This document shows positions 33,526 to 64,000 of a stretch of 64,000 bases of DNA, piece by piece. The stretch lies in sequence record PV796108.1. One strand, given 5' to 3'. Each line of letters starts with the position of its first letter. Positions within the stretch are counted from its first letter, which is position 1. The translations under genes and the position numbers were made by a program. The notes under the pieces are model-generated. The model was not told where the DNA came from. It ran no database searches and saw only the letters and a list, made by a program, of their open reading frames with translations.

Positions 33526-33562
33526 AAAAAGAAAAGACGACCTTAAAGGTCGCCTTTCTTTT
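33526..33562 (-). terminator. intrinsic terminator ending the lysis operon
   Basis: minus strand GCGACCT-tta-AGGTCGT followed by CTTTTCTTTTT. Confidence 0.7.
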
Positions 33563-33779
33563 CTTCTTGTGCTGCTTCTTCAGCAGGGTCTTTGATGCCA
33601 GTACCGATAGATGGGTTGTTGATAACACCAGCTAATACAAGAACATAAAGAACTTTTTCTACATAGTCATTGTAATGACCTAAGTCAGTTAAATAACCTG
33701 CATCCATAAGTCCCATTCCAATTAAACCAGCTACAGCTACCCATAGTACATAGTTTTGAAAACGGCTTTGAGTCTTCAT
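33543..33779 (-). CDS. holin (small, two transmembrane helices)
   Basis: SRFQNYVLWVAV...VLVLAGVINNP directly after endolysin. Confidence 0.85.
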   Translation of the reverse strand: MKTQSRFQNYVLWVAVAGLIGMGLMDAGYLTDLGHYNDYVEKVLYVLVLAGVINNPSIGTGIKDPAEEAAQEEKKGDL

Positions 33780-33797
33780 GCATACACTCCTTTTAAA

Positions 33798-44352: not shown

Positions 44353-44386
44353 AAAAAAGGGCAGGCAGCCGTACGCCGCCCACCCC
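44353..44386 (-). terminator. strong intrinsic terminator
   Basis: GGGTGGGCGGC-gtacg-GCTGCCTGCCC-TTTTTT. Confidence 0.8.
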
Positions 44387-44461: not shown

Positions 44462-47400
44462 TTATTTATATTTCACCCATAGTTTCGCTTCAGGTAGGAA
44501 CGCCATGTAGTTAGCTGATGAACCATCGTACTTTAGACCGAAACCTCTGTCTACGCCATTAGCGATTTTGTTCTGTACGAACCCAGTAACATTGACCCAT
44601 TTACCTTCGCCCCATGAGAACCAATCTGTTACATATTCACCAGATACAAGTGGGTTGTTAGGTGGTCTTCCGTCAGCATATTGATGGGCAACAATTCGTG
44701 CTTCACGAGCACCTGAGTTACCACCCTTGCCATAACGAGTGATATACAACTGAGCGTCAATAATAGTCTTGCCTCGTAACGTGTTAGCCAAGTCAGAAGA
44801 GAACCACCATACGCCTGTACGGTTTCCGTATCCCCACGTTCCTTGTTTAACATAGATTTCATCATCCCAATAACCATTAGCTGACCAGTTCTGTCCACCT
44901 TGAGAACTCCACTCTCTTACATATTCTGATGGAGGTGGCGGTGGCGGTGGAGTAGCTTCGCCATAATCAACTGTCCAGATATCATTTCTCCATGATAATC
45001 CATCTCCCATGTAGCCACCGACGTAAGCATTTGCCCATCGAGTAACGCTACCATCTGGTCTTGTTCCTTCACCTTGTACGATAGAGAAATCAGATACAAG
45101 AATTGAATATGGGTTTCGACCACCTTTGCAGTCTTTGATATAAGCATTTGCATTGTAGATAATAGAAAATGCTCTGGCTTTTGCATCATATATCTCAATA
45201 GCAACTGCACGTACATATGAGAAACGTACACCAGTAACACCCATTTCCACTTTCTTATTACAATACAGTTTGCAATACCAAATATCTACGTTGGGAGACC
45301 CAGTGATATTAATAAGTGAATCTGTTCCAGTCTCAGCCATTGTTCTATCAGTTGCTTGCATAATAAAGTGCTGAATATAAAGCTGACATAGAACACCATT
45401 AACAACAATACCAGAATTGATTGTCTTACGGCTTCCACTGTTATCACTTCGAACGGTTATAGAACCAGGACCCATGAATCCAGATAAGAAGATAGGGCTA
45501 TCAATATTTCCATTCAATTGGATAATCTCTATCTTGTTTGGAACGTACTTACCCATCTGGTCGATATAGGCTTGCATGTTTCTTTTCGGTGCTCCCCTAG
45601 TACCAGCGTTATTATCATTACCGTTGATAGAATCAAAGAATACTTGACCTACTGTTTTATCAATGCCAACGACACCACCGACAATTACGTCAGCTTGTAT
45701 ACGAGGGAAGTAAGCACCAGTCTCATCAATCTGACCTACTGTTTCAGTCTGTCCGTTTCCACCTTTCTTCACAACCTGTAAGAATCCATTACCTGTAGAT
45801 GTACCTAATCTTAAAGTACCACCTTGTGCTTGGTCGAAAGTGAATATGCCACTATCTATGTCAGTAACAGAAGGATGCGCCCAATAAGAATCAAGACTAG
45901 CTGTTTGAGAGTAATGATGGAAGAATCGAATAGCGACATATCTCGTATCAGGATGCATTGCATAAGCTGTGTCTGTGTTCAATCCTCTACCTATTAAGTC
46001 AGGGTCTGTTGATGTAGCAGGAAGAAGTAGTGATTCCATATCACGCCAGTTGTCGTATTTAGCACCAGCGGTTCCAACTAAGAAGTATGGATTTGTTGAG
46101 TTGAATCCACCCTCAAAGTTTCTATTGGAATAGTTAAACCATTTCATACCGATTGCTTGTTTATTTGCATTGTATGCCATAACACCAAAATAAATTCTAG
46201 CAGTTGGAGTTGTATTTGGCATATAAGCTGAAACCTTCACACGATACGTTTTACTCGTATTAACTTCAAACAAGCTAGAGTAGATTTGCAAATCATTAGC
46301 TGTTGTCATTTTTAATACTTTTCCATACTGACCTTTCGGGTCATTCACAACAGAGATCGTTCCTCCAGCTCCAATACTATATCCTTCTAAAGTTCCTGTG
46401 TTAGAGAAGTTATTAACAAGGTCTTTTGCCAATACAGACAATTCGTTTGTTGTAATAGTGCCAGACTGGATATGACTTGCGTTAATTGCATTAGATTGGA
46501 TGTGAGTAGAGTTGATTGCATTCACAACAATATGATTTGTTTTAATGCTGCCATCAACAATAAGCTCTCCACTGTTTTTACGTCGTATCTCTACATTTGT
46601 AAAATACCAGTTACCGAAATTTGCAGTACCATTAATTTGGACAAATGGACGTGCTCTTCTCACGATATCATTTGGTACTGCAATCTCACCAGACACTCGT
46701 ACCCACTTACCAGCAGTAGGTGCTTGGTATATAGAACGCCATTGTGGATTTTGATAATCTGTGTCAGTAAAATGCATCCCTATTCCTATAGGAAGTGTAC
46801 TATCTGTTGTATAAACATCCATAGAAACAAAGAACTTATCTGTGCTTTGAACAGAAAAATATTGGTCTCCATAACTATCACGTTGTTGAGTTCGACCAAC
46901 ATACTTGGTTGGAGCACCAATTGTGTTTTGAACAACAGTTACATTTGCACTCCATCCTATGTTTGTTCCTTCAGAGAATTGAGGATTAGTTACGTAGTTT
47001 GTAAAATCTGAAATAGCAATCTTATCAGCAGTAATTGTATTCGTCTGTATAAGTCCGCCTTTAATGTAAGTAGTTCCGCTAATAGCATCACCTTTCCATA
47101 CATTCACTAAGTCACGAGCAGTATCCCATGCAGAACCTCTGTTGTTAAGAGATGTAGAAACATCAAAGATTGCATCAGTTGCATCTTCAGGAGCAGGACT
47201 CCAATCTGTTGCACGGTTACCAGCTTCTAGTTTTACTTGTCTAAAACTAATAGCTGAAGCACCAGCAAAACCATTATTATCAAAACGAACATAACCCTCT
47301 CGTTCATTAGCATTAGTTCTAAATGTATAAATAATACGAGTCCATGTTTTAGCTGGGATATTTCGAGGAGCATATTCATGAGCAAAGTCATATTCTTTTG

Positions 47401-50400
47401 GCGAATCGAAGTTTCGTCCTAAGAAATACATATCCGTTGTTGTATTACCATCAGTCCATACCATTGCACTTAATGTGTATTCCGTATCAGGATTAACTCT
47501 TACTCTAGTAGATGAAGCCGTCTTCTCTGCCGTTACAGTATTTCGAATCGTAAAGATATTCTCTCTCCAGTAGTCTGAGTTGTCCACTGATAACGTTCCA
47601 GCGCTAGACCAATCTTTTAGATTGATAGGATTAGAAGAGTTACGAATTAAGTTACGTCCACCCACATTGATATTATCAATTGTGTACAGCGTATCTGCTG
47701 GACTAGGAGACCATTCAGTAGCAACATTACCACGTTCTACTTTTATCTTAGCAATAGAAATACTGCCATTCTTTGTAATCCAAAGATAGAAGTAAGGATT
47801 CTTTAATGTAACATCTCCACAAGCTGCTGTCCCAACATACTTAATCCACTTACCCGTTGGAGTATCTTTTGTAATAGACTTGAATGGGAATGAATTCACA
47901 TTCGACCCATTAGGGTTTATTCCTTTAATTTCAATACCCATACCCTCATCTAAAGTTGTATTGATTTTATACCAGAATGAAACAGTAATATAATCGCCTT
48001 TATAAAACTCCTGAATACCTGCTTGTGCTTTTAAGTCCTGAGACATACCTTTCCAGACTGAACTTGTAGCACCAGAAGAATGTAGAGTTGCAAACCTTCC
48101 ATATTGCGGGTCAGTTCCCATCACAGCATCAGCAATGCCAGCGTTAGCCCAAAGTTCTTTACCTCTGAAGTAATCACTATTGTTAATAAGGTTTGTTCCA
48201 CCGAATTGTGTATTAGCAATCTCAGCTCTAGCCTTATCAGAGATGTAGCTATTAAAGGAAACATCACCTTGGAAGTTAATATTTTTCGCTTCAATCTTAA
48301 TTGCTTCAGGAGTTAAGTTGATTGCAGATACTAATGTTGTACCATCTACTACATCTTTTCCACCAGATTGCTTAACTATTAATCCAATTCGATTAGATGT
48401 CTGCTCAATAGATGTTTGCATTTCTGTAGCCATAGTAGATAGAGGAGAATTGATTCCTTGAGGAACACCATTTTGAATCAATGAACTTACTTCAGCATAT
48501 GGTGCATCAATTGCATTTGGCATAATAGATTCAAGACCATTACCACGACCAATACCTGGAATACCAATAAGAGCTTGTGGTATACGTTGGTCATTAACAA
48601 CCTTACCAGAACCACCACATCGAGCTATTGCATCAGCGAGCTTTTGGTTTGTATAGGCAGAATCTTGTGTAGTGATTAAAACAATTACGTCATCTTTCAA
48701 TGAGTTTAATTTATCAGCCATTGCATCTCTATCTGGTACACTACCATGAGTATCATATGTCTGAGTAAACGTAACAGACAAATCAGAACGTCGTAATATC
48801 ATCAGGCAATGCCCACGTCCATTATTAGGTGTAACATCTTTATTGTTTAACACAACCATTCTACCAGCAGGTCTGTTTTGTCCAGTACCTTTTAAATAGA
48901 CACGTCCTGAATTTACAGCCGTTTGTGTTTCTGTGATCGTAGAATTTAATTTACCATCAAAAGCTTGAAATTGTTGAGTAACTGTAGACTTATACTTCTC
49001 TAATGCTTGAACAGTATCTTCAGGGTTTGGAGACCAACTAGATGCTTTGTTTCCTTCTTCTAATTGAATGGATACAAATGAATAAGTACCCGTTGCGGTT
49101 GCACCACTTCTACCTAAATATACTGTTTCATTTGCAGATGTAGGAGTATAAGTAAGAACAAGTTTCTCCCATTGATTGTCCTTTGTTCCAATGACAGTAT
49201 TGTATTTGCTATTATTATTAACCATTAGAACTGGACGAAGTGTTGAACCAGTTTTACACCACACCCATGCAGATAAAGTATGAGGAACACCAGGCGTTAC
49301 CTTTACAGACTGCATAACACCTTGGTTCACATTATCTACTTCCATACTAATACAAAGAGGAGAGTCTTGTATTGTCCCTTGCGTATCAACCCACAATTTA
49401 ACTGGAGTTCCCCACTGACTCCACTCAGCCATTGTTCCATCTAAAAAAGCACTATTGCGAATAATGTTTCTTCCACCAATAACCATAGAGTTAAGCTGGC
49501 TATCAGCATAGTCTTTGCTTACTTGAGTAGAGTCATTGATCGCATCTACAGTATCCTCAGGAGCTTCAGTCCAATCTGTCGCTTTACTTCCTGATTCCAA
49601 CTTAAATGAATGGAAATAGAATGTAGTAGCAGTACCATCTTTTTGATAATATATAGCATTGGAATGATACTGACCTGTAGTATTCGCTTTAAATGTGTAC
49701 GTAAACTTTTGCCATGAAGTTGTAACTCCATTAGCAGACTGACCGCCATTCTCAGAGCCTATTGTGATTGTGCAATTACGGCTAGCTTTTATATAAACAG
49801 ACCATGTATATGTTTCACCATTCTTTAGAGGCTGAACAGATGCCCTGTGTACACCACCTGAAATAGTTCCATCCATTGTTACTACCATAGCTTTTCCACT
49901 AATTGCACTAGGCTCATTTGAAATTACAACAGCCTTAGCATTGTTCCAGTTCCATCCTGAAATACCAGAAGGAAAACCTGTTTTAGCAATTAAGTTTCTC
50001 CCACCAACTTGAATGTCATCCATTCGAGAGTACATATCAGCTGGATTAGGTTGCCATGCAGTTAATGTATTACCTTCTTCTAGTTTCATGTTGCGTAAAT
50101 AAGATGTAACACCTAATGTGTTCAGTTCTTGATGATAAATAAAAGGAGTAAATTCTGTTTCACCAGTTGCTACAGTTTTGATTCGAAGAACAATCTTCTC
50201 CCATGTATTAGCAGTTGCTGTAGTTTTAGATAGCAACCACTTACCAGCACTATGAACATTCTCTCCGTTTCTAGTCCAACAATGTAATGGAGCAGATTCA
50301 TTCACAACCATATCTTTACTAAACATAACTTCCGCACTAAAGATGTATTCTGTGCTAGGTTTTAGTTTGTATAAGACGTGGCTCCATTGTTTATATGAAC

Positions 50401-51088
50401 CTACACCTTTAATAACTTTATCTCCATCTTTGTCTACTACTTCTATAGATGTACCTGAGTTTAATTCCCAGTACTTTGTATTGAGGAAGTCACCACTATT
50501 AAATAGAATGTTACGACCACCAACTTGCATATTATCTAACTTATCTTTAACCTCTTTAGGGTTATATCCGCTTTCGAACTGAGTAGTATTGTCAATACGT
50601 AAAGCATCAGCACGGATTGCTAGCTTACCATCCTTTGTGAAGAAGATACCTTTCACACGGTCATCACCAGTTAAGACACTCCATGTATTCGTTGCGTCAG
50701 CAGGTGGCTTACTTCCTGTTATCTTATTGTAGTCTGGAGCAGTTACCTTATCCCATACAATGGAACCGCCAACCATATTAATGTTACCTTTGATAACTAA
50801 ATTACCATCGACATCAGCATTCATTAGTATTTCGTTCGTATCTTTCTTTTTAAACTCAATACCTTTAGAAGCTGCCAGTGTTAAAACGTTCTTAGAACTG
50901 ACAACGGTAATGCCATTAGTAGCATCTATCTTTACACCATTGTAATCTTGACTTATTTGAACGGAGTTTCCAGCCTTATCCCACGTATCTTTATTATTTG
51001 TAATCGTATCGTTAGAGTATTTGCCAAGTTCTAGGTTAACGATTTCAGTTGATTCTTTATAGTCATTCCAAAGAGTTAACTTTGCCAC
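44462..51088 (-). CDS. large tail fibre/receptor-binding protein A (2208 aa)
   Basis: repeated GGRNLI.NS...K.E.G..AT.W.P.PED carbohydrate-binding-like modules, ILEI/PANDER-like domain, beta-helix-like region, poly-Pro hinge; GTG start with RBS aggtga. Confidence 0.85.
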   Translation of the reverse strand: MAKLTLWNDYKESTEIVNLELGKYSNDTITNNKDTWDKAGNSVQISQDYNGVKIDATNGITVVSSKNVLTLAASKGIEFKKKDTNEILMNADVDGNLVIKGNINMVGGSIVWDKVTAPDYNKITGSKPPADATNTWSVLTGDDRVKGIFFTKDGKLAIRADALRIDNTTQFESGYNPKEVKDKLDNMQVGGRNILFNSGDFLNTKYWELNSGTSIEVVDKDGDKVIKGVGSYKQWSHVLYKLKPSTEYIFSAEVMFSKDMVVNESAPLHCWTRNGENVHSAGKWLLSKTTATANTWEKIVLRIKTVATGETEFTPFIYHQELNTLGVTSYLRNMKLEEGNTLTAWQPNPADMYSRMDDIQVGGRNLIAKTGFPSGISGWNWNNAKAVVISNEPSAISGKAMVVTMDGTISGGVHRASVQPLKNGETYTWSVYIKASRNCTITIGSENGGQSANGVTTSWQKFTYTFKANTTGQYHSNAIYYQKDGTATTFYFHSFKLESGSKATDWTEAPEDTVDAINDSTQVSKDYADSQLNSMVIGGRNIIRNSAFLDGTMAEWSQWGTPVKLWVDTQGTIQDSPLCISMEVDNVNQGVMQSVKVTPGVPHTLSAWVWCKTGSTLRPVLMVNNNSKYNTVIGTKDNQWEKLVLTYTPTSANETVYLGRSGATATGTYSFVSIQLEEGNKASSWSPNPEDTVQALEKYKSTVTQQFQAFDGKLNSTITETQTAVNSGRVYLKGTGQNRPAGRMVVLNNKDVTPNNGRGHCLMILRRSDLSVTFTQTYDTHGSVPDRDAMADKLNSLKDDVIVLITTQDSAYTNQKLADAIARCGGSGKVVNDQRIPQALIGIPGIGRGNGLESIMPNAIDAPYAEVSSLIQNGVPQGINSPLSTMATEMQTSIEQTSNRIGLIVKQSGGKDVVDGTTLVSAINLTPEAIKIEAKNINFQGDVSFNSYISDKARAEIANTQFGGTNLINNSDYFRGKELWANAGIADAVMGTDPQYGRFATLHSSGATSSVWKGMSQDLKAQAGIQEFYKGDYITVSFWYKINTTLDEGMGIEIKGINPNGSNVNSFPFKSITKDTPTGKWIKYVGTAACGDVTLKNPYFYLWITKNGSISIAKIKVERGNVATEWSPSPADTLYTIDNINVGGRNLIRNSSNPINLKDWSSAGTLSVDNSDYWRENIFTIRNTVTAEKTASSTRVRVNPDTEYTLSAMVWTDGNTTTDMYFLGRNFDSPKEYDFAHEYAPRNIPAKTWTRIIYTFRTNANEREGYVRFDNNGFAGASAISFRQVKLEAGNRATDWSPAPEDATDAIFDVSTSLNNRGSAWDTARDLVNVWKGDAISGTTYIKGGLIQTNTITADKIAISDFTNYVTNPQFSEGTNIGWSANVTVVQNTIGAPTKYVGRTQQRDSYGDQYFSVQSTDKFFVSMDVYTTDSTLPIGIGMHFTDTDYQNPQWRSIYQAPTAGKWVRVSGEIAVPNDIVRRARPFVQINGTANFGNWYFTNVEIRRKNSGELIVDGSIKTNHIVVNAINSTHIQSNAINASHIQSGTITTNELSVLAKDLVNNFSNTGTLEGYSIGAGGTISVVNDPKGQYGKVLKMTTANDLQIYSSLFEVNTSKTYRVKVSAYMPNTTPTARIYFGVMAYNANKQAIGMKWFNYSNRNFEGGFNSTNPYFLVGTAGAKYDNWRDMESLLLPATSTDPDLIGRGLNTDTAYAMHPDTRYVAIRFFHHYSQTASLDSYWAHPSVTDIDSGIFTFDQAQGGTLRLGTSTGNGFLQVVKKGGNGQTETVGQIDETGAYFPRIQADVIVGGVVGIDKTVGQVFFDSINGNDNNAGTRGAPKRNMQAYIDQMGKYVPNKIEIIQLNGNIDSPIFLSGFMGPGSITVRSDNSGSRKTINSGIVVNGVLCQLYIQHFIMQATDRTMAETGTDSLINITGSPNVDIWYCKLYCNKKVEMGVTGVRFSYVRAVAIEIYDAKARAFSIIYNANAYIKDCKGGRNPYSILVSDFSIVQGEGTRPDGSVTRWANAYVGGYMGDGLSWRNDIWTVDYGEATPPPPPPPSEYVREWSSQGGQNWSANGYWDDEIYVKQGTWGYGNRTGVWWFSSDLANTLRGKTIIDAQLYITRYGKGGNSGAREARIVAHQYADGRPPNNPLVSGEYVTDWFSWGEGKWVNVTGFVQNKIANGVDRGFGLKYDGSSANYMAFLPEAKLWVKYK

Positions 51089-51119
51089 AATCTATCACCT
51101 ACTTTCATATTTTTATATA

Positions 51120-51147
51120 GAAAAAAGAGAGCATTTCTGCTCTCTTT
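51120..51147 (-). terminator. intrinsic terminator overlapping promoter start region
   Basis: AAAGAGAGCA-gaaa-TGCTCTCTTT-TTT. Confidence 0.75.
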
Positions 51148-51176
51148 AACGTAACCATACATTCCCAATACGTCAA
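51148..51176 (-). promoter_or_regulatory. putative promoter, class 1 (TTGACG-N17-TACGTT, spacer ends ATGGT)
   Basis: upstream of fibre A. Confidence 0.65.
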
Positions 51177-51198
51177 CACATAGTGTAAATTTACACCA

Positions 51199-51345
51199 CT
51201 AAGCGTAAAGATTTGGGTTTTTTGGAGTTGCAATGATGAAGTCTGCTTCAGGTTCAGTGATGAACTTAGCTTTTGCATACTGACGAACTTGTTGCTCTTC
51301 TTTAATCTTGTCTACAATCCACATGTTCAAGATAAATTGATACAT
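51199..51345 (-). CDS. XkdX-like small tail-fibre assembly protein
   Basis: MYQFILNMWI...FITEPEADFII; RBS aaggagg. Confidence 0.75.
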   Translation of the reverse strand: MYQFILNMWIVDKIKEEQQVRQYAKAKFITEPEADFIIATPKNPNLYA

Positions 51346-51454
51346 CAGAAAGCCTCCTTTTATATAGCTTCGTGTTGTCTTTGGCCCTAGACTAATGATG
51401 ATTAAAATAATTCTCTTCATGCATGACGTGAACTTACCATTTCAATCTGACACA

Positions 51455-51483
51455 AATGTAACCATTTCATATATAAGTGTCAA
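51455..51483 (-). promoter_or_regulatory. putative promoter, class 1 (TTGACA-N17-TACATT, spacer ends ATGGT)
   Basis: directly after XkdW-like stop codon. Confidence 0.65.
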
Positions 51484-51488
51484 TGGTA

Positions 51489-51875
51489 TTAATTTGGTAA
51501 ATTCATCTTCTGTAACATCGAAATCATATTCATCATTTGAATTACAGTATCCTCTGTATTATTGATACGATTTTGTAATTCATTGTTCTTTTGTTCGAAC
51601 TTATCTCTCTCTTTCTTCATTGCTTCTAACTCTTCTTCTATTGTCATTTTGTTAACAATAAAGTCTTTAGATAAGTCTGCGGCTCTGATTTCATCTGTTA
51701 TTAATGCATCAATTTCTATTTCATAATCATCAGCAAGAACAATACATCTTCCTTCTGTAAAGGACATCATTGCCTGATTTGTTCTTACTTCGTTACCTAC
51801 AATCTCTATGATGGTTACGCCTTTTTCTACATATTCAACTTTATCTTTTTCTCGTGTTAAATAGACTAATTGCAT
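51489..51875 (-). CDS. XkdW-like tail-fibre chaperone with C-terminal coiled coil
   Basis: start MQLVYL (RBS gaggtg); precedes XkdX-like gene. Confidence 0.6.
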   Translation of the reverse strand: MQLVYLTREKDKVEYVEKGVTIIEIVGNEVRTNQAMMSFTEGRCIVLADDYEIEIDALITDEIRAADLSKDFIVNKMTIEEELEAMKKERDKFEQKNNELQNRINNTEDTVIQMMNMISMLQKMNLPN

Positions 51876-51894
51876 ACTAGCACCTCTTTTATAA

Positions 51895-51915
51895 ATAGAG
51901 GGCCGAAGCCCTCTT
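51895..51915 (-). terminator. hairpin after fibre B stop codon (probable leaky terminator)
   Basis: AGAGGGC-TTCG-GCCCTCT followed by ATTT. Confidence 0.55.
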
Positions 51916-54900: not shown

Positions 54901-57900
54901 GATTAATAGAACCACTTTCTAATTTAAATGTTGCTTCAACATAAATATATTCATAGAATGGTTTATCCCATGCATAGATATTGAAGTATCCATTAGCTCC
55001 TGCTGTTGTTGTAAATTTAACAGAGTTGCCATTTCCATTTGGAGAAGCGATTTTAGCAGGTGCTGGACCGACTAAACCTGAATACCCATTTGGCAATTGA
55101 CCTGTCCAATCTGCAAAATTATAGTTTCTATTGAAATAACTAGATTCATTAGAGGAGATGACGTTTGTATAGTCTTTTGCATTTTGTTCAGCTGTAGCAA
55201 TCTGAGCATCGACATCACCGATAGATGGTTTCCATGCAGTCATCTTATCTCCTTTTTCAAACTGCATACCAGTTAAATATAATATGCCAGCTGTTGGAGT
55301 TTTAGATGCACCGAAGTATAAACGAGCATATTGGGTTTTAAACTCTACTGTAATAGAAAGTCTATGCCATTTTTTATCGTTATAATAACTTGAATCCATC
55401 TGTCTGATGTCATAAGTTAAAGTTGAATTTCCATCTCGCATACCTAGTGATAGGTTAGATGATTCTGATTTCATATACGCAGAGATTGTATATTTACCTG
55501 GCTCAACTACTAAGTCTATATACGCCCAGCAATCTGTATCTGCTTTTGTTTCCATTCGAATGCCTTTAGAGAATCCATTTAAATCTGTTATGTTTTGGAT
55601 TGCGTTATTGGCATTCATTGATAGAAATGGAGCTAGTGAACCAGAAGCCAAGTTAGAGTTGTCTAAATAGTTAAGCGCTCCAACTTCCATATCGTCCATG
55701 TAAGAGTAATAATCTTCAGGAGCTGGTGCCCAAGCTGTTGCTTTATTACCAACTTCTACTTTTAGATTGTTTACACGAATCCATGCATATCCATTTGAAC
55801 CAGTTAAATCCCTGCCCGTTCGACCAGCTATCAATAAGCAAGCTTTCTTGTCATCACGATTTGGAATGAATGAGTAGCTAACATTGTAGTAGTTTGTAGA
55901 AGAGCCATTTGCAATTGGAGTTGCAATAGGGAAGTCTGTCGTTCTTACTGTAGGAAGACCTTGGTTGTTTCCACCATCACTGTACATTAGATACAAGTAA
56001 TCAAGAGTATTGTTTAACTCACTTGTAGCAACAACCATAGAAACGGTATATTCTATACCTTTCTTGACTTCAAATGTTCTACCGTATCCGACCATACCAA
56101 CAGCTGTGTTTGCTGGAACGACTTGTTGTTTACCGTCAATAATACTTTCCATCTTCAAGAAGTTGAAGTTATTCCATGAATCCCACACAACTGAAACTGA
56201 TGTTGGTGAAGCACTCCATTTCTGCCATCCATTAACGGTATTAAACATTGTGCCAGTAACCATATTACGAACACCGATATTTACTTTACCAATTTCATTC
56301 TTTACATAGTTACCATCTACCTTGTTATTAATTGTATTAGCAGTAGTAGTATCAAACGCTGAGAATGTCACCTTACCTTGAAGCTCAATGTTTTCAAAAC
56401 GAATCTTAGCGTCGGCTGGAGTTAAGTTGATTTGTCCAATGATCGCTCGACCATCAACAACTTTATTGCCACCTTCTTGTTTTAAGATAACATCAATACC
56501 TTTAGATGTTTGCTCAACAGAAGTCATTCTTTTCTCCATAGCTTGCTTGTCTGCTGTATAAGTAGTGCCTTCTACTTTACTAGAAATCTTACCGTCCATT
56601 ACAGAGAAGTTTGTGTTTACTGTATTTACATAGCGACCAGTATTTACAGGAATAATGAAACCTTTATCTGTCTCCTGATATGTTCCTGATTTCGCACTAT
56701 CAAATAACGGAGTCCAGTTACGACCATCTACAGACACTTCAGTCTTTGTTTCTTTATAAATACGATTATCATTATAGTAACGCCATACTTGAATGAAATC
56801 TAAGTCATCGTAGATTTTAGTTAAGTCTATTTGCACAAATCTAGGATTGGTACCAGAAGAAGCAACCTCACCATAGTTTCCAGAAGTTAAATTTTCATTT
56901 GTAATATTAGATAATGGATTTGTTGTTGAAGCGACACCGTTTGTAACAACAACCATTCTTGATGCTACGTTTGTTCCATTACGCATAGCTTTAATTTGAA
57001 CCCAGTGGTTTACATCGTTCTTGTCACTACCTCTAGACCAGTCACGAATATAACGTACTTTTACAATATCACTTCTGTTAGATGCGGCAATTGCTTCTTG
57101 CTCTTGTTCTTCTGGAGCAATAGAGAATGATGTTGCTTTATTTCCATCCTCCCATTTTACATTTCGAATCCAACCTTGAGCTTCGGGGTTTGCTGATACT
57201 TGCGCTCCATAGAAGTAAAAATTAATTGGTTTTGTTAAATCAAATTTGTCATCTACTTTGAATGTGAATGAAGCTTTCTCCCATGTATTTATTGCAGATG
57301 GACCTACATGCCAAATATAATCACGGAATTGTCCTGTTGTTGATCCAACTGGAGTATGATGGAAACCTGCGCTTAGTTTATAGTTAACATCGTCTGTCAT
57401 CATTTCAAAACTAATTGTGTATTCCTTACCACCTTCAAACTTCATTTGTGCAAGTCTCTCAGGAGAAATCCATTGTGAGAATCCTAACCATCTATTCTTC
57501 ATGTCAAACTGATTGTTCTTATTAATAAATTCGAGAACAGGATATCCGAATTTAGAAGTATTTAAGTGGGCGTGATAACCAACAGTAGGATTTGTTGTGC
57601 CACTATTGTAACCATTAGACCACGGCTGATTTGGAGTTAATAATCCATTCAGACTTTCATCCCAACCTATCGTTCCAGGTAGTACTTCATTGTAATAACG
57701 GAAGTCTCCGTTGAACAAATAGTTTCGAGCTGCACCAATATTGATACCATCTACTGAGTCTTTAATAGATTCAGCTATATCTTCTTTTGATACTCTATGT
57801 TCCGATGGTTTAGAACCTTGTTCAAACATAGGCAATGCGATATAAGCCGTACCGTTTTTCCATACTCGACAACAAACACGAACCTTCGTAGTACCCTCTG

Positions 57901-58813
57901 GGATAACGCCACTAGCACTAAATCTTTGCCATTCATTATTTATAGATGGTTTTGCTCCTGCACTGAATGTGCCTGTTCTCGTATTATCATCTTTTTCGCA
58001 GATGATTTCGATATTAATACCGCCGTCTACTGCTGCTACATCTGGAGTCATTACATAGAAAGAAGCTGTATGAACTTTCCCTATCATGAAAGGCATATTT
58101 ATTTGTTCAAGACCTCGATATACGTTCCCAGTGTTTCCAGTTTGAACAGATTTCAATGTAGGGTATCCACGGAAAGCAACCGCAGTATCAATAGATACGT
58201 TTGCAACTTTTGTGTAATAAGTCATACCTTTCCTAAATGTAGAATCACGGAAGATATTTTCCCCACCAATTTCAATTTTGCTAGGGTCATATCCAGCTTC
58301 ATATTGTGTGCTTGAACCAACAACAATAGCATCAGCTTTTATTAGAAGCTTATTATTCGATGTGTAGAATAAACCTTTAATTCTATCGTCTGTTGTTAAT
58401 GACGTCCAAGTGTTTGTCGCATCAACAGGTGGCTTGGTGCCAGTGATAAAATCGTAAGTAGGTTTAGAAGATAATGTGTTCCAAGCAATAGAACCGCCTG
58501 TCATATTGATATTACCTGTTACCGATAAGTTACCTTCAGCATCTACGCCAAAGATCGTACTGTTTCCAGCAATCTTCGTAAGGTTAATACCAGCCGTAGC
58601 ATTTAACATTAACTTATTCTTACTACTTACAACAGTAACACCGCTTGTGTCTATCTTAACACCATTGTAGTCAGCACCAACTTGGACAGAAGTTTTACCT
58701 TTGTCCCAGCCTGTTTTATTGGCATCAATAGTTGTACTAGATAGATTACCGTATTCCAAGTTTAACACTTCTTGGTATTCTTTAAAGTCATTCCATAGTG
58801 TTAATTTAGCCAT
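51914..58813 (-). CDS. large tail fibre/receptor-binding protein B (2299 aa), paralog of A
   Basis: same MAKLTLWND start and near-identical C-terminus as A; CBM-like repeats and an F5/8 type C-like domain. Confidence 0.85.
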   Translation of the reverse strand: MAKLTLWNDFKEYQEVLNLEYGNLSSTTIDANKTGWDKGKTSVQVGADYNGVKIDTSGVTVVSSKNKLMLNATAGINLTKIAGNSTIFGVDAEGNLSVTGNINMTGGSIAWNTLSSKPTYDFITGTKPPVDATNTWTSLTTDDRIKGLFYTSNNKLLIKADAIVVGSSTQYEAGYDPSKIEIGGENIFRDSTFRKGMTYYTKVANVSIDTAVAFRGYPTLKSVQTGNTGNVYRGLEQINMPFMIGKVHTASFYVMTPDVAAVDGGINIEIICEKDDNTRTGTFSAGAKPSINNEWQRFSASGVIPEGTTKVRVCCRVWKNGTAYIALPMFEQGSKPSEHRVSKEDIAESIKDSVDGINIGAARNYLFNGDFRYYNEVLPGTIGWDESLNGLLTPNQPWSNGYNSGTTNPTVGYHAHLNTSKFGYPVLEFINKNNQFDMKNRWLGFSQWISPERLAQMKFEGGKEYTISFEMMTDDVNYKLSAGFHHTPVGSTTGQFRDYIWHVGPSAINTWEKASFTFKVDDKFDLTKPINFYFYGAQVSANPEAQGWIRNVKWEDGNKATSFSIAPEEQEQEAIAASNRSDIVKVRYIRDWSRGSDKNDVNHWVQIKAMRNGTNVASRMVVVTNGVASTTNPLSNITNENLTSGNYGEVASSGTNPRFVQIDLTKIYDDLDFIQVWRYYNDNRIYKETKTEVSVDGRNWTPLFDSAKSGTYQETDKGFIIPVNTGRYVNTVNTNFSVMDGKISSKVEGTTYTADKQAMEKRMTSVEQTSKGIDVILKQEGGNKVVDGRAIIGQINLTPADAKIRFENIELQGKVTFSAFDTTTANTINNKVDGNYVKNEIGKVNIGVRNMVTGTMFNTVNGWQKWSASPTSVSVVWDSWNNFNFLKMESIIDGKQQVVPANTAVGMVGYGRTFEVKKGIEYTVSMVVATSELNNTLDYLYLMYSDGGNNQGLPTVRTTDFPIATPIANGSSTNYYNVSYSFIPNRDDKKACLLIAGRTGRDLTGSNGYAWIRVNNLKVEVGNKATAWAPAPEDYYSYMDDMEVGALNYLDNSNLASGSLAPFLSMNANNAIQNITDLNGFSKGIRMETKADTDCWAYIDLVVEPGKYTISAYMKSESSNLSLGMRDGNSTLTYDIRQMDSSYYNDKKWHRLSITVEFKTQYARLYFGASKTPTAGILYLTGMQFEKGDKMTAWKPSIGDVDAQIATAEQNAKDYTNVISSNESSYFNRNYNFADWTGQLPNGYSGLVGPAPAKIASPNGNGNSVKFTTTAGANGYFNIYAWDKPFYEYIYVEATFKLESGSINPAGILFRHWRADKSSIYYDSVFKFKDVVPNPVLNKWYTVSKVFKVPTNADHGGYGVYPMASWGTIDSALAANVLYFDSVITRPATSEEIKAYDSKVLLDQKSSVWSNASTLVDSWKGAAQNGKTTINGGLIQTNTILADKIAIGDFTNLSSINEDRDNLPYTVVTIGTKRYIKIGQQAYATATFADANTMEFKVKDQYYLACYGYKETSMNVNFIVRYHYTDGTWTNAGIVGFPMTTTYGLIEAKLTITAEPTDGKTIKRVQFFSEKDSSTTGFYYMRQIELRKMYSGSLLVNGTITAENLAVNSVNAGHIQTNAVNATHIQAGAITTNELSVLAKDLVNNFSNTNSLEGYTIGTGGTISIVNDPKGQYGKVMKMTTAADLQIYSQMFEVNSSKTYRVKVSAYMPSPTATTRLYFGVLAYNANKTLIGMKQFDYASGIFDSDYFTTNPYFYLSGAGTKFTEWVDMEALVLPTTISKAEQVGRPLNTNTALIMHPDTRYLSIRFFHHYPKANVDSYYAHPSVVATDSGMFTFDQAVGGTLRLGTDTGNGFLQVVKKGTQGQQETVGQIDETGAYFPKIQADQFIGNIIGMEMEGRDVYFDSVNGNDNNPGTKASPKRNIQSYLDGIGKYLSERIGIWLQNGQIDAPLIIKGFFGPGTMTIGGADSVKRNAYGNFVVYGVTCNLYLQHWIFQGKDNFTAPGTDACVYVWASTNVDIYNCKLYANKKVDMGISVVRGGFARVTYTEIYDVKNRGLSVIYNSGAWVGWGCKGGRNPIAILTSDYAWVQGDYNVDNGSSATRWDGSIARWGFTYVGGYNRDGVNWRSDVWTIDYGEATPPPPPPPSEYVREWSSLGGQNWSANGYWDDEIYVKQGTWGYGNRTGIWWFSSDLANTLRGKTILDAQLYITRYSKGGNSGAREARIVAHQYADGRPGNNPIVSGEYTSDWFSWGEGKWVNVTSFVQNKIANGVDKGFGLKFDGSSANYMAFLPQAKLWVKYK

Positions 58814-58833
58814 TTAAATTTCTCCTTTCTCAA

Positions 58834-59577
58834 TTATTTAGGCATCGTCATTTGTATTGGTTCTTCTGTAATAACGATATCAGCCCAGTACGTTTGACTA
58901 GAACCATCCATTGCATTACTCAATAGATAATCTTCTGAGATTGTTGGAAGAGGTGTGCCACGTCTATCCACAATTTCAATCTTAGCTGTAATTTCTCCAC
59001 GTTCATTCATGATTGCATTTATATCTCTTGTCTTTTGAATCTGCAAATAGTATTGGTCATGATTACGTTCAATTGGAGCAACAGGTAATTCTTTTCCGTT
59101 TCTATCGCAGAATAGATAAGCTGTTTCTTCTGTATAGATTTCTCTATTTGCTTGAGATGTGAAGTCATCTCCACGAAGAATTAATCCTATCTCACCTTGT
59201 TTAATGAAATGAATTGCATCAATCTGCTGACTAAGTGCTGTTACTTCTTTCTGCATATCAGCCAACATACCATCAAAGATATGGTCATAGCTTGCAGTAA
59301 TCTTTTCTAATAGAAGAGAGTTGTGGAATAAGTAATTTAAATCCACCTGCATATTGGCACCAATCTGATTATGGGTTTCAGAATCCAATCTATCAGTCTG
59401 TAATAATAGTTTTGATAATGGTTCATGCTTCTCTGCTACTTTCGCAAGAGCACGTTTAAATTCTTCTTCTGTATATACTGTATTAAATAAATCATCATAG
59501 TTTTGAAGAACTCGTTCTACTTCAATACGTTGACTCTTAGGTAATACTTCAAGATATCCTTTTAAATAAGAATTCAT
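58834..59577 (-). CDS. putative baseplate/tail protein, paralog family member
   Basis: LDSETHNQ...DLNYLF plus coiled coil; start MNSYLK. Confidence 0.6.
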   Translation of the reverse strand: MNSYLKGYLEVLPKSQRIEVERVLQNYDDLFNTVYTEEEFKRALAKVAEKHEPLSKLLLQTDRLDSETHNQIGANMQVDLNYLFHNSLLLEKITASYDHIFDGMLADMQKEVTALSQQIDAIHFIKQGEIGLILRGDDFTSQANREIYTEETAYLFCDRNGKELPVAPIERNHDQYYLQIQKTRDINAIMNERGEITAKIEIVDRRGTPLPTISEDYLLSNAMDGSSQTYWADIVITEEPIQMTMPK

Positions 59578-59927
59578 TTGTTTTCCTCTCTCTCTACCGT
59601 AGTTGTAATATGACGAACCCACGGCCCAGGTTCTTCACCAACTGCTCTCATTCTAATATGGGGTGCAGCAGCTGGAATAATTTCATCTTGTACATAAACC
59701 CAAGTACCATCATTGGCACGAATACGAATTTGAGGATTGAAGGATGCGTTGATTTCAACTCGTTCTCTAATCATCCTTGCAAAGTCAGAAGGTATATCTC
59801 CTTTAGCATTAGAACGGATTCGATACTTTACATGAGGCCCAACTGATTTTGGGTCTTTTGTTGTAGTGGAATCGTACTTACCATATTTGTATCTTTTTCC
59901 GTATTTGAACCTACCATATCGAGGCAT
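59574..59927 (-). CDS. small virion-associated protein with N-terminal YG repeats
   Basis: MPRYGRFKYGKRYKYGKY; RBS aaaggggat. Confidence 0.6.
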   Translation of the reverse strand: MPRYGRFKYGKRYKYGKYDSTTTKDPKSVGPHVKYRIRSNAKGDIPSDFARMIRERVEINASFNPQIRIRANDGTWVYVQDEIIPAAAPHIRMRAVGEEPGPWVRHITTTVEREENK

Positions 59928-59947
59928 ATTCGAAATCCCCTTTCATA

Positions 59948-59973
59948 TAAAAAAGAGGGCTTTCACCCTCTTT
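59948..59973 (-). terminator. intrinsic terminator overlapping promoter start region
   Basis: AAAGAGGGT-GAAA-GCCCTCTTT-TTT. Confidence 0.75.
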
Positions 59974-59974
59974 G

Positions 59975-60004
59975 AACGTAACCACTTGCAGTTAGTGTAG
60001 TCAA
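59975..60004 (-). promoter_or_regulatory. putative promoter, class 1 (TTGACT-N18-TACGTT, spacer ends GTGGT)
   Basis: directly after fibre C stop codon. Confidence 0.65.
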
Positions 60005-60012
60005 GATAATTC

Positions 60013-63000
60013 CTAGTTTAGGTAGCCTACAAAGTATAGGTTTCCGTTTGGAGTGAATGTTGTATTGTGACCAGTTTCACCCACATTAAACTTCTTCCAA
60101 ACTTTAGAAGCATCCATACTTGCAACATACCACTTACTATTTGAACCATCGTACATGATATAACCTGTCGCTCCACCAGTTGTCAGGTATCCTTTTGTGA
60201 CACCCATTCTTGCACCGTTCACAATCAGATAACCATCTTTGGTTTTGTCTGGATTACCAAGGTCATCATAACCATGGAAGAAGAACTTCTCTACACCACC
60301 TACGTTTTCTACTGTAGACATAAGTCCTTTTGTAGAAAGGCGGTTAGCAGTTTCAACAACATAGTTTTTACTGTTTACTTCTGTTGTAACATCTTCGAAT
60401 GTAAGCATATCGACTTGAGCAACACCAGCAGTATCCCCACCGTAGTTCACAATAAACATTGGACGAACATATACAGTTCCAGCTCTAAATGTTTTATGCG
60501 TGTCCCCGATACCAGTAATTAAACCAGTAAATGTTTGCCATCCATCTGTTACTTTTAGTGTCGGTCCATCAGCAGCGAAGTAACGATGAGCACCTTGCCC
60601 ACCAGTAAGGTTCTTATATTTACCATCAAGTGTAGCTACTCCAGCAAAAACCTTGTTAATGTTGTTGCCGTTAGTAACTTTCTGCTTTACACGGAAAGTC
60701 ATACGATATGTTTTATTCGTATCGACGGGGATAGCATTCTTTGAAAATACAATCTTGTTGCCATTGAGTTCTAATGCACTACCGCCGTTCGCACCTGCTC
60801 CACTAATCTGTTGGAAACCAGCTTGCCCTGCTAGTGATGGTGGACTCTCATCTTCTGAAATGGAAGAGTACAACATGATTGATCGTTCGAAGAATGGGTC
60901 TTGCAAATTCTTGAATGATGCACTAGGGTCATATCCTTCGTTGAAGATATTGTCGGGACCAATCTGGATTAAGTCCGCTTTGATTTTACCAGTAGTAATC
61001 GTAGTTCCATCAAAGACCGTTACGCCAGGTCGGAATACATCAGCTGGGATATTCTTATTAGAAGTTTCCCAAGGTGGACGCCATTGCATATTCATTCTTG
61101 CTCCGCCAGTACCTTCGATATACTCAATAGAGATTGCATTCCATGTATTTGCTTCTAACGTAACAGTAGCTGTTCTATCAGCTGTTTGATACACTGGGCT
61201 ATCTATAATTACTGTGTTATTCAAAGTGACTTTTACACCATCATCAGCTTGAGCAATGATTGTGTAGTTACCTGTTTGTTTAGCGAATAGATATCCTTGC
61301 CAACGAATAGAGAAATTATCTACAGTAGGAGCAATGATTCCTGGTCCACCTGTTCCCCAATCAAATGAGATTACAGGGTCAATCTTTTGACCAGCATAGT
61401 TTTCGAAGTTTTTACCTCTGTAGTAATGACCAGTTAAACCAACTTCACGAGCTGCTACAGTCATATGTTCAGCAGAGATACTTCCAGCCGCAATCTTATC
61501 AGCTGTAATTGCACCAACTGAAATGTCCTCATCAGTATGAAGTTGCCACTGAGTCGCTACACTACCTCGTTGAAGCATAGGACGAGAACCCCAGATTGTA
61601 CCATTACGTACAACATAGAATCTTGCTCTAGCTTTCACAGCATTAGCAGGTGCAGTACCTGTAACAGTGACGTAACTCCAAGTATTATTCGTAGGAGGTA
61701 CGAATGACTTTGTTGAAGTTCCGATACGAGTTGTTGCATTGTACCATTCAATTTCTAGGTTTGCACCTTGGTCTAGTAATGTTCTATCTTCTACGAATGA
61801 GTTAGCAGATAAAGTGAATTGCTCTCCTGGACTAACTGGAGTAAATTCAGAGAACACTCCCCACCAAATATCTGCTGCTTGCCCTGTTACGCTTACCTTG
61901 ATACTGTTTGTAGTAAAGAACTTCTTCGTTACATCAACAGTCCAAGTTCCACCAAGACCAGGTGCAGAAGCAGTCCAGTATTTAGGAGTACCGAAATCAT
62001 ACGCTGTTTCATGTAATAACTGTTGAGCAGAAACATTTAAGTTACCTGCATTAATCGTACCAGCATCTAAGTTAATGATTTTTACTTTAGCCGCATCCAT
62101 TGTTCCAGTAGTAATAGAGTCAGCTCGAATCTCAAGCTTGTTACCATTCTTAATGAACATACCTTTAATGTCGTCATTACCTGTTAATTCTTTATAGGTA
62201 TTAGTTGCATCAGTTGGAGGCTTTGTCCCAGTGATCTTAGAATAGTCAGGACCGTTACCAGTAACCTTATCCCATGAGATGCTACCACCTTGCATGTTAA
62301 TATTACCAGTGATAGTTAAGTTACCTGTTGAGCTATCTACACCAAAGACAACAGCACTATCAGATGTTCTTAGAATCTCGATACCTTTTGTAGCATTCAG
62401 TGTTGTTTTGTTTTTCGAGCTTGTGATTACAACACCATTCGCAGTATCAATCTTCACACCATTATAATCTTGTGCTGGCTTAATACTATTATCAGCATTG
62501 TCATTAATTGTTTTAGCAGTTGTAGAAAGGAGTTTATCCATACTGTCGTATAGTTCTCTCCATTTTAAATCCCAATCTGTTTTAACAATTGTGAGGTTGT
62601 TTGCATTTGCATTATCCCAAGGACGAGGAGAAAGAGTTTCAAGGTATCCTTTTAAAGCTACATACTTTGTCTCTACTGCTTTGTAGTCTGCATTGCTATC
62701 TCCTAGCTTCGCTTGCCTTGCTTGTAAACGAACGTGGTATATTTCACCGACAGTACCAGAATCAATAGCAGTGATTGCAGGAAGAGTATTTCCAGAAGGA
62801 GCTGCACCTAGAAGGAATGTTAATGAGTCTTTAATCTCTTTTCTTTCTGAAGGAGTTAGGATGTTGTCTTTAGACATATCAGCTATGTCAGTAACAGTTT
62901 TGTTCCACTTGTCTTTTACTGCTTGAGCAAGTTGAGCTTCTGTTAATCCGCCTACGATTTCTAAGAAACCATTTGTGATTTTCATACCGTCGCCACTAAT

Positions 63001-64000
63001 TACTACATTACCTTTAGCTGACTCAGCTTTGAAACCAAAGTCACCCATTGTAATAGCAGTAGGAAGTGGGCCAGCCAGATTCAAGTCATCTCGTAAACCT
63101 AAGTTAATTAAGTTAGGATTATATCCATCTTCAAAAGTTGTTGTTTTACCAACACGGATACGAGCTGCATCAATAATACCCGATGTAATCTTAGTTGCAT
63201 CTAGGTTTCCAATTTGAGCATTAGAGATAGCACCTTCTGCAATGATTGCACTACCAGCAGTAATTGTACCTACTTGGATATGGTTTGCATTAATCTCCTG
63301 TGCTTTAATCTTATCACCAGTAATTGTTTCAGCGACGATATGTTTAGCTAGTACAGATTCAGCAGCGATAATACGTCCGTCTACTTCACCATCACCAATC
63401 TTAGGATTCGTAATAGCTCCATCAGTGATACCTTCGTTGTATACACCCTTTTCATCATAGAGAACGGTTTGTCCATCTGCACCACGAACACGGAAACCGT
63501 ATTGCGTACCATCACCATTTACATCACCAATAGATACACGTTCAACAGGAACTTGGCTTCTATCGAATACTTGCAATCTATTAGACTTAATCTTTAGTAA
63601 CCCATCTGGACCTTGAACAGTAACTAAACCTGTATCAATCTGACCAGCTTTAATTTTATTTGCAGTTAAGCTAACAATCTTCGCATCCGTGATACTAGCA
63701 TCAGCAATCTGTACAGAGTCGATAGTACCTTCTTTAATAACAGCGCCATCAATTTTACCTAAGTCAGCAGAGATAACACCAGTAGCAATGTGGATAGCTT
63801 CAATAACATTAGCTTGAATATGTTTTGCATCCAATTCACCAATAACAGCTGTATTGATTTTAGCGGAATCTGCATTCATGTTTTCAGCATAGATGTTCAT
63901 TGCTTCAACAACATTTGCCTTCATACGTTCGGCATTAATATCACCAGCAGTAATTTTCGTAGCATTTAAATTTCCGATAGCCGCATCTTTGATTACAGCC
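60013..64000 (-). CDS. large tail protein C (5' end outside window) with beta-helical I.A..I repeats, PA14-like domain and CBM-like domains
   Basis: frame stays open from 63924 to the window edge; GLTGHYY...DP.I.FDWG.G.P...DNFSIRW.G (PA14). Confidence 0.8.
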   Translation of the reverse strand, partial: AVIKDAAIGNLNATKITAGDINAERMKANVVEAMNIYAENMNADSAKINTAVIGELDAKHIQANVIEAIHIATGVISADLGKIDGAVIKEGTIDSVQIADASITDAKIVSLTANKIKAGQIDTGLVTVQGPDGLLKIKSNRLQVFDRSQVPVERVSIGDVNGDGTQYGFRVRGADGQTVLYDEKGVYNEGITDGAITNPKIGDGEVDGRIIAAESVLAKHIVAETITGDKIKAQEINANHIQVGTITAGSAIIAEGAISNAQIGNLDATKITSGIIDAARIRVGKTTTFEDGYNPNLINLGLRDDLNLAGPLPTAITMGDFGFKAESAKGNVVISGDGMKITNGFLEIVGGLTEAQLAQAVKDKWNKTVTDIADMSKDNILTPSERKEIKDSLTFLLGAAPSGNTLPAITAIDSGTVGEIYHVRLQARQAKLGDSNADYKAVETKYVALKGYLETLSPRPWDNANANNLTIVKTDWDLKWRELYDSMDKLLSTTAKTINDNADNSIKPAQDYNGVKIDTANGVVITSSKNKTTLNATKGIEILRTSDSAVVFGVDSSTGNLTITGNINMQGGSISWDKVTGNGPDYSKITGTKPPTDATNTYKELTGNDDIKGMFIKNGNKLEIRADSITTGTMDAAKVKIINLDAGTINAGNLNVSAQQLLHETAYDFGTPKYWTASAPGLGGTWTVDVTKKFFTTNSIKVSVTGQAADIWWGVFSEFTPVSPGEQFTLSANSFVEDRTLLDQGANLEIEWYNATTRIGTSTKSFVPPTNNTWSYVTVTGTAPANAVKARARFYVVRNGTIWGSRPMLQRGSVATQWQLHTDEDISVGAITADKIAAGSISAEHMTVAAREVGLTGHYYRGKNFENYAGQKIDPVISFDWGTGGPGIIAPTVDNFSIRWQGYLFAKQTGNYTIIAQADDGVKVTLNNTVIIDSPVYQTADRTATVTLEANTWNAISIEYIEGTGGARMNMQWRPPWETSNKNIPADVFRPGVTVFDGTTITTGKIKADLIQIGPDNIFNEGYDPSASFKNLQDPFFERSIMLYSSISEDESPPSLAGQAGFQQISGAGANGGSALELNGNKIVFSKNAIPVDTNKTYRMTFRVKQKVTNGNNINKVFAGVATLDGKYKNLTGGQGAHRYFAADGPTLKVTDGWQTFTGLITGIGDTHKTFRAGTVYVRPMFIVNYGGDTAGVAQVDMLTFEDVTTEVNSKNYVVETANRLSTKGLMSTVENVGGVEKFFFHGYDDLGNPDKTKDGYLIVNGARMGVTKGYLTTGGATGYIMYDGSNSKWYVASMDASKVWKKFNVGETGHNTTFTPNGNLYFVGYLN

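Follow-up and report, generated by a model that had tools for sequence, protein, structure and literature searches.

A common module in three giant tail fibre genes of Bacillus phage Edson: a probable joint between different anchors and variable lectin-like arrays

In phage T4 the long tail fibre is built from gp34, gp35, gp36 and gp37; neighbouring genes encode its proximal and distal parts, which are linked end to end. In the Ackermannviridae several receptor-binding proteins (RBPs), such as TSP1-4 of CBA120, stand side by side, and their conserved N-terminal parts are proposed to assemble on a baseplate-attached scaffold (PMC8825819, PMC11414711); in the Bacillus thuringiensis phage 0305phi8-36, paralogue domain families a-c are proposed to form a virion anchorage system (PMC2147016). 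The subject of this study is a set of three giant genes, which we call A, B and C, of Bacillus phage Edson (host B. cereus), found in the first 64 kb of its 233.8 kb record PV796108.1; this whole stretch of 64,000 nucleotides is the window, and its coordinates coincide with those of the record, to which positions 44462-64000 are 100% identical. The adsorption machines of jumbo Bacillus phages are, to our knowledge, almost unannotated, and the Edson record carries the label ‘hypothetical protein’ on every gene. We propose, at a probability of roughly 0.6, that A, B and C encode three tail fibres of a jumbo myophage related to 0305phi8-36, which would share a common plan of anchor, module, variable lectin-like array and C-terminal region. 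The module, common to all three, would be a conserved joint or first shaft segment that connects the preceding anchor to the variable distal part, and not a docking surface itself; the anchor would be a covalent 1061-residue stem in C, and a 36-residue head plugging the fibre non-covalently into the virion in A and B.

A preliminary description of the window had noticed that the three proteins have a segment in common, and had put its length at ~110 residues. That the segment is shared, far beyond chance, is confirmed by BLASTP, by hidden Markov model (HMM) searches and by alignment, and the positions first given for it were right to within a few tens of bases; its length, however, is ~130 residues. 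Identity across the three copies is 45-55% (BLAST E 1e-37 to 1e-56). In pairwise BLASTP, residues 37-207 of A align with 1066-1241 of C (47% identity, E 6.5e-37), 33-347 of B with 1062-1393 of C (35%, E 1.2e-45), and 1-198 of A with 1-191 of B (52%, E 8e-56). The three-way alignment of the module has 60 invariant columns, which include Gly/Asn/Pro motifs, and 28-31 columns are invariant over 7-8 copies from Edson and two relatives. Between Edson and phage vB_BceM_WH1, its closest relative in the phage collection (85% nucleotide identity, and the only close one there), the ratio of nonsynonymous to synonymous substitution rates (dN/dS) within the module is 0.04-0.11. The module HMM finds exactly three copies in positions 1-80 kb of Edson, and tblastn locates it at three sites in the complete Edson record, at three in WH1 and, partially, at one in phage vB_BauM_KLEB27-3. 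At the DNA level the three Edson copies are 57-63% identical, with a longest identical run of 12 nt, by which recent gene conversion among them was rejected. In A and B the module lies close to the N-terminus and in C it is internal, and the head that begins MAKLTLWND is common to A and B and present in those two only, both as first described. C is not a protein of 1303 residues: these are its last residues, those inside the window, and the full protein has 1894. The features concerned are as follows.

44462..51088, minus strand: fibre A gene, 2208 residues, with head, module, CBM-like jelly-roll array and A/B-type C-terminal region (open reading frame and annotation)
50981..51088, minus strand: head of A (residues 1-36), a predicted beta-hairpin plus helix (AlphaFold2 strands 4-6 and 9-11, helix 13-39)
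50594..50980, minus strand: module copy in A (residues 37-165; BLASTP, HMM, alignment)
51914..58813, minus strand: fibre B gene, 2299 residues, with head, module, jelly-roll, discoidin-like domain and A/B-type C-terminal region
58718..58813, minus strand: head of B (residues 1-32; alignment, tblastn, HMM)
58328..58717, minus strand: module copy in B (residues 33-162; BLASTP, HMM, alignment)
60013..64000, minus strand: fibre C gene, 1894 residues, cut by the window end (full gene to 65697), with stem (1-1061), module, jelly-roll, PA14 and C-terminal domain
62515..64000, minus strand: stem of C, the part inside the window (full stem residues 1-1061), 94-100% identical to WH1 and conserved in every relative, separate or fused
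62116..62514, minus strand: module copy in C (residues 1062-1194), internal (BLASTP, HMM, alignment)

Compared with the CBA120 type of apparatus, the Edson locus is alike in having its RBP genes clustered beside baseplate genes and in the differences between their distal parts. It is unlike that type in that neither head nor module has sequence or fold similarity to the TSP2/TSP4 anchor or to T4 gp10-like/XD domains; in that the Edson proteins are lectin-like fibres of 1900-2300 residues, not enzymatic spikes, in a phage of a Gram-positive host; and in that the module is not confined to the N-terminus, as the CBA120-type shared part is, while the 36-residue head is so confined except for a copy of its helix in the related protein P0005. 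Any likeness to CBA120 or G7C in contacts between RBPs would, in Edson, be read from gene fusion and fission only. Phage 0305phi8-36, a curly-fibred jumbo phage, belongs to the same broad lineage: Edson g0660 matches its ORF173 (E 1e-12, 20% identity) and a structural protein of KLEB27-3 (44%), and by such matches Edson is a distant relative of 0305phi8-36 and closer to KLEB27-3. In both phages several large virion proteins would have in common a paralogous, repeated domain which ties variable domains to the virion; however, families a-c are internally repetitive units of ~50 residues in genes other than the Edson fibres, and tblastn in 0305phi8-36 found neither module (E<=1e-3) nor head (E<=10). 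As in the T4 long tail fibre, stem and distal fibre are adjacent separate genes in three relatives of Edson (the contigs L004, L006 and L008, described below); unlike in T4, the joint is covalent in Edson C and there is no equivalent of the knee protein, and Pfam and PDB searches of A, B and C gave no homology to gp34-gp37. The Edson fibres are thus not members of the CBA120, 0305phi8-36 paralogue or T4 fibre families; they may nevertheless work in a similar way.

The position of the module in other proteins bears directly on its role. A profile of head plus module was searched against 1.84 billion representative proteins and gave 169 proteins at E<=1e-3, and positions were counted over the 149 true matches listed. 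The module is N-terminal in 38 of these, internal in 99 and less than 100 residues from the C-terminus in 12, with a median of 630 residues preceding it. (One protein in that search, P0015, with 22 apparent ‘stretches’, was discarded as a false positive, a tandem-repeat artefact.) Among 70 module bearers that were scanned, 25 match PHROG 6211 (‘minor tail protein’), 20 have Prophage_tail, 15 have YOMG_N and five have an endosialidase-chaperone domain. In P0028, P0036 and P0019 YOMG_N and Prophage_tail do not extend beyond residue ~500, the module being at ~680-900, and the homology of P0028 to the Tal proteins of phages Tsamsa and Kirov stops at 661-681. The module groups by homology with these uncharacterised fibre extensions of Firmicute Tal/YomG-type tail proteins. 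Such siphophage tips (YOMG_N plus Prophage_tail; PHROG 6211) resemble the Edson fibres in their anchor-module-distal plan, with the module or its halves placed directly after the anchor; unlike them, their anchor is the body of a siphovirus Tal protein of ~950 residues, where the jumbo myovirus Edson has a 1061-residue stem or a 36-residue head. The module itself has two halves, the first at profile positions 30-117 and the second at about 90-175, each of which is also found alone; the first half occurs in series, in two or three copies, in P0005, P0006, P0014 and P0105.

These findings bear on the proposal, made in the preliminary description, that the module is an N-terminal docking domain by which A and B bind C, or a baseplate site common with C, to give a branched fibre. 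The module does lie near the N-termini of A and B and is strongly conserved there, in its invariant columns as in its dN/dS, and Ackermannviridae offer a precedent in branched complexes which assemble on shared N-terminal domains (PMC8825819, PMC11414711). However, it is internal or C-terminal in 111 of the 149 listed homologues, in the tip proteins of siphophages it stands downstream of Tal/YomG anchors, several proteins have its first half in serial copies, and it resembles none of the known anchor domains (gp10-like, XD) in sequence or fold; it is also found inside the sole fibre of KLEB27-3, a phage with no A/B-like fibre to act as partner. In C the module is covalently continuous with the stem, so that docking would be unneeded there. 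We consider docking by the module itself to be unlikely; judged by its position and distribution, the module looks like a fibre joint or shaft unit rather than an N-terminal adaptor.

No curated family in Pfam or NCBIfam covers the module. The gathering score of Pfam Gp58 (PF07902), 34.5 bits, was missed by C (19.4) and by A (18.5), and a sub-threshold Gp58-like match (E 5.8e-5) is seen in one of the three module copies; a PDB sequence search with the module profile gave no match. AlphaFold2 on a 7-sequence alignment gave an unusable model, with a predicted local distance difference test score (pLDDT) of 46, and this was replaced by a 62-sequence alignment whose rows were picked from a 70-sequence subset of the homologues. 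The resulting monomer model of head plus module (pLDDT 77.6) has, in order, a hairpin (4-11), a helix (13-39), six strands (49-99; pLDDT 88-98), a loop, a helix (132-141) and a second hairpin (147-159). Foldseek with this model gave nothing against PDB at E<=0.001; the weak top matches there, which are trimeric beta fibres, were non-significant and were not counted as evidence. Against BFVD it returned only proteins of the WH1 type, an ILEI-domain protein of a Lactobacillus phage and, after these, a mixture of tail and minor structural proteins. As a joint or first shaft segment the module would be beta-rich and probably trimeric, with a first half that can be repeated.

The head, which precedes the module in A and B, is a plausible docking element. 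An HMM of the first 44 residues matches at the extreme N-termini of A and B, of the homologues P0001, P0002, P0004, P0008 and P0128, of a 738-residue protein of contig L004 and of a 1951-residue protein of contig L009; it finds no head in C, in P0003 or in the KLEB27-3 fibre gp050. Aligning the head by hhalign with the pre-module region of C and P0003 revealed no similarity before residue 37 of A, and C therefore hides no degenerate head. Over phage records, tblastn with the head finds two places in Edson, two in WH1 and no other phage record, and the head has no Pfam, NCBIfam or PDB sequence match. In P0128 (262 residues) the head is present without a module behind it, while in P0005 the head helix and the first half of the module occur together, internally, two or three times; head and module are therefore separable building blocks. 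Since, apart from this internal helix, it is confined to N-termini, the head is a better docking candidate than the module, and a candidate docking peptide can in this way be told apart from the common joint.

The anchor of C would be its stem, which we suggest is a conserved proximal fibre encoded beside the baseplate genes, and the relatives of Edson vary in whether this stem is fused to what follows. KLEB27-3 has a single fibre, gp050 (2078 residues, identical to P0020), and no head-bearing fibre: its residues 3-1012 resemble 2-939 of C (38%), 1000-1085 resemble the module and 1006-1771 resemble 42-862 of B (25%). In L004 (Logan contig SRR12632055_2516) a 1076-residue stem (resembling C 7-814) is followed by a head-bearing PA14 fibre of 859 residues (C 1066-1893, 54%), and two further head fibres of 2164 and 738 residues make three in all; L009 (SRR19546401_35313) has a similar layout. 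In L003/L006 (ERR14864770_2445) a 1156-residue stem (C 1-959, 65%) is followed by two unrelated genes and then by a PA14 fibre of 1031 residues (C 871-1893), which opens with a copy of C 871-1060; there is one head-bearing fibre, which is B-like and has 1749 residues. L008 (SRR9184947_1296) has a 1191-residue stem and then a 1521-residue fibre which opens with a piece like C 936-1113 and repeats the module unit, and L007 (ERR11465982_61) has a fused, C-like fibre of 2186 residues together with a head-less giant of 3972 residues. The distal cassettes thus take three forms: some are continuous with the stem, some are free proteins that start with a head, and some are free proteins that start with a second copy of the stem end. 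Head-bearing fibres number 0 to 3 per genome, these counts being minima for L007, L008 and L009.

By Rosetta-stone reasoning this indirectly supports the view that head-bearing fibres and the stem belong to one assembly, a branched or clustered apparatus; the fused and split variants in seven related genomes indicate that the pieces are probably adjacent in the virion. We infer that the head is an attachment element with its socket on or beside the stem assembly, and the odds that this socket is formed by the stem or by a baseplate protein are roughly equal. A bolder suggestion, which we offer tentatively and with more doubt than belief, is that the head is a plug for a socket at the distal end of a C-type stem, in a three-pronged branched fibre whose PA14 arm is covalent and whose A and B arms are non-covalent; arms would then be exchangeable cassettes that this phage lineage acquires, loses or fuses to the stem, in keeping with 0 to 3 plug-bearing fibres per genome. 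If true, a jumbo phage of a Gram-positive host would have a branched, multi-lectin organelle for adsorption with plug-in arms, made from domains without known structural relatives.

Two further resemblances concern these pieces. The N-terminus of the C stem (residues 4-122, record ~65330-65688) resembles that of the baseplate-region protein g0820 (25% over 136 residues, E 4e-6); the match region in g0820 is L002:45566-46579, which lies beyond the window at 78565-79578 of the Edson record. The resemblance to g0820 is also seen in KLEB27-3 gp050. It is a second shared N-terminal motif, possibly marking the end which attaches to the baseplate. In L006 (14545-15279, equivalent to L003:7154-7888) a separate gene of 244 residues resembles residues 1421-1572 of A at 50%, so that a piece of an A-type fibre exists there as a stand-alone gene.

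Several points weigh against the explanation that we prefer, with the module as joint and the head and stem as anchors. The presence of A, B and C in the virion, their copy number there and their geometry are predicted from the genes. The AlphaFold2 model is a monomer of a probable trimer and has no PDB match (best E 0.39), and the label ‘joint’ or ‘shaft’ comes from position and distribution and not from a known fold. In P0005 (L008:10001-14566) the helix of the head (profile 18-44) is internal, and strict confinement to N-termini therefore applies only to the first ~12-17 residues of the head. Fusions, read by Rosetta-stone logic, point to proximity and not to a defined contact, and the head-fibre counts for L007, L008 and L009 come from ~12-26 kb examined in each.

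The fused and split forms also invite another explanation: that the module is kept mainly as an evolutionary linker beside exchangeable distal cassettes, where it would favour recombinational swaps, and has no special mechanical role. In keeping with this, gp050 of KLEB27-3 is C-like up to the module and B-like beyond it, distal cassettes switch between fused and free forms at the module, and a replacement between Edson and WH1 in C starts just past it. In this last case the jelly-roll at residues 1231-1370 of C (window 61588-62007) is 10-50% identical between the two phages, with flanks at 90-100%; the difference between them is a domain-cassette replacement, and the domain is likely to be a specificity determinant. 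(The equivalent domain of B shows a milder dip in identity between Edson and WH1.) Against a role as linker alone, the DNA identity of the Edson copies is so low, and their identical runs so short, that these copies cannot currently be substrates for homologous recombination, and the strong purifying selection and the invariant Gly/Asn/Pro motifs point to structural constraint. We hold it improbable that linking is the main reason why the module is kept, though the linker and structural roles are mutually compatible.

Distal to the module, the three fibres have different lectin-like domains. Three CBM_4_9 domains and an ILEI domain are found by Pfam in A; in B there are a jelly-roll of the GTA-spike-fibre type and a weak discoidin domain; and the lectin-like domain of C is PA14. 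PDB sequence searches with full A and B gave no match, and C matched through its PA14 domain only. These distal features are as follows.

48560..50029, minus strand: lectin-like array of A (CBM_4_9 repeats plus ILEI, residues ~354-843; Pfam, PHROG)
44465..47197, minus strand: C-terminal region of A common with B (residues 1298-2208; 58% identity)
57773..58273, minus strand: jelly-roll of B after the module (residues 181-347), homologous to C 1226-1393 (BLASTP); NCBIfam GTA_spike_fiber, E 1.3e-11
61519..62022, minus strand: jelly-roll of C after the module (residues 1226-1393; BLASTP)
61054..61440, minus strand: PA14 domain of C (residues 1420-1548; Pfam E 4.9e-20; PDB 6qe7/6qdi by sequence)

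A and B are evidently paralogues (their N-terminal 198 residues are 52% identical, and a common C-terminal region of ~930 is 58% identical), which raises the question of whether they are redundant or decaying duplicates, with one working virion component and no multi-fibre apparatus; the relative L003/L006, with its one head-bearing giant, would fit with this. However, both open reading frames are intact and have good ribosome-binding sites: A starts with GTG after the Shine-Dalgarno sequence AGGTGA, and B with ATG after AAGGAG. WH1 has also kept both genes, with proteins 88% identical to those of Edson; in the centre, A has CBM_4_9/ILEI where B has discoidin/GTA-spike; and other relatives retain two or three head fibres. 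Protein identity between Edson and WH1 is 88-89% over A, B and C, with dN/dS of 0.09 for A, 0.10 for B and 0.12 for C, and all three genes are therefore maintained by purifying selection. We regard redundancy or decay of A or B as very unlikely.

The broader claim of the preliminary description, that the three proteins form a multi-receptor apparatus, survives in part. It is plausible, because these are tail-type proteins with different lectin-like domains under purifying selection, and what has become unlikely is that the module serves as its docking domain. All three giants match PHROG tail-protein and host-range families, and their WH1 orthologues are labelled ‘tail fiber domain-containing protein’ (gp073 and gp076) and ‘virion structural protein’ (gp079). 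A multi-fibre, multi-lectin and probably multi-receptor adsorption apparatus is thus a plausible, indeed likely, description of the locus, and under our proposal the virion would show three different sets of carbohydrate-binding domains. The last ~500 residues of A (~1700-2208, window 44465-45980), and likewise of B, are ~30% identical to tail fibre proteins of CP-51, JL and Shanette, unrelated myophages of the B. cereus group. The resemblance suggests a receptor-binding tip that phage families with the same host group have in common. The fibre locus of Edson in this way gains a domain grammar (anchor, module, lectin array, C-terminal region), whose boundaries can be used in annotating about 170 tail-protein clusters that have this uncharacterised module.

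A, B and C form one minus-strand cluster between baseplate-region genes and conserved structural and lysis genes, in which no broken genes were seen. The order on the transcribed strand starts with large baseplate-region proteins (g0820-g0780, one with a lysozyme or transglycosylase match) and goes on through g0770, C, g0750 and g0740, B, g0720 and g0710, to A; A is followed by g0690-g0640, six conserved genes for ‘virion structural protein’, and these in turn by holin and amidase. Matches to the PHROG families 19670, 19683, 20243 and 21108 (‘virion structural protein’), together with homologous structural genes in a conserved order, place Edson among the 0305phi8-36-like jumbo Bacillus myophages. 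A literature search on Edson, WH1 and KLEB27-3 gave no relevant paper.

The lysis cassette, downstream of the fibre and structural block (window 33543-34787), is formed by a small gene resembling holins and by an endolysin of the Amidase_3 type, whose wall-binding domains are SH3_3/DUF5776. GC hairpins with runs of T, terminator-like in form, are found on the minus strand directly after C (59952-59973), just before A (51124-51147) and directly after A (44358-44386), a placement that suggests cassette-like transcription units; the overall count of such hairpins is not above chance (13, with 10 +/- 3.6 expected), and a promoter scan was uninformative (57 matches, with 69 expected).

Four further genes lie between the fibres.

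51199..51345, minus strand: g0710, 48 residues, paired with g0720 (annotation)
51489..51875, minus strand: g0720, 128 residues, with a coiled-coil-like C-terminus (annotation)
58834..59577, minus strand: g0740, 247 residues, adjoining the C-type fibre in all relatives
59574..59927, minus strand: g0750, 117 residues, adjoining the C-type fibre in all relatives

The g0710/g0720 pair is restricted to genomes that have the C-terminal ~460 residues of the A/B-type fibre, namely Edson, WH1, L004 (two pairs) and L009 (two pairs), and it is always placed immediately upstream of a fibre gene with this A/B-type C-terminus. The pair may encode fibre accessories or chaperones.

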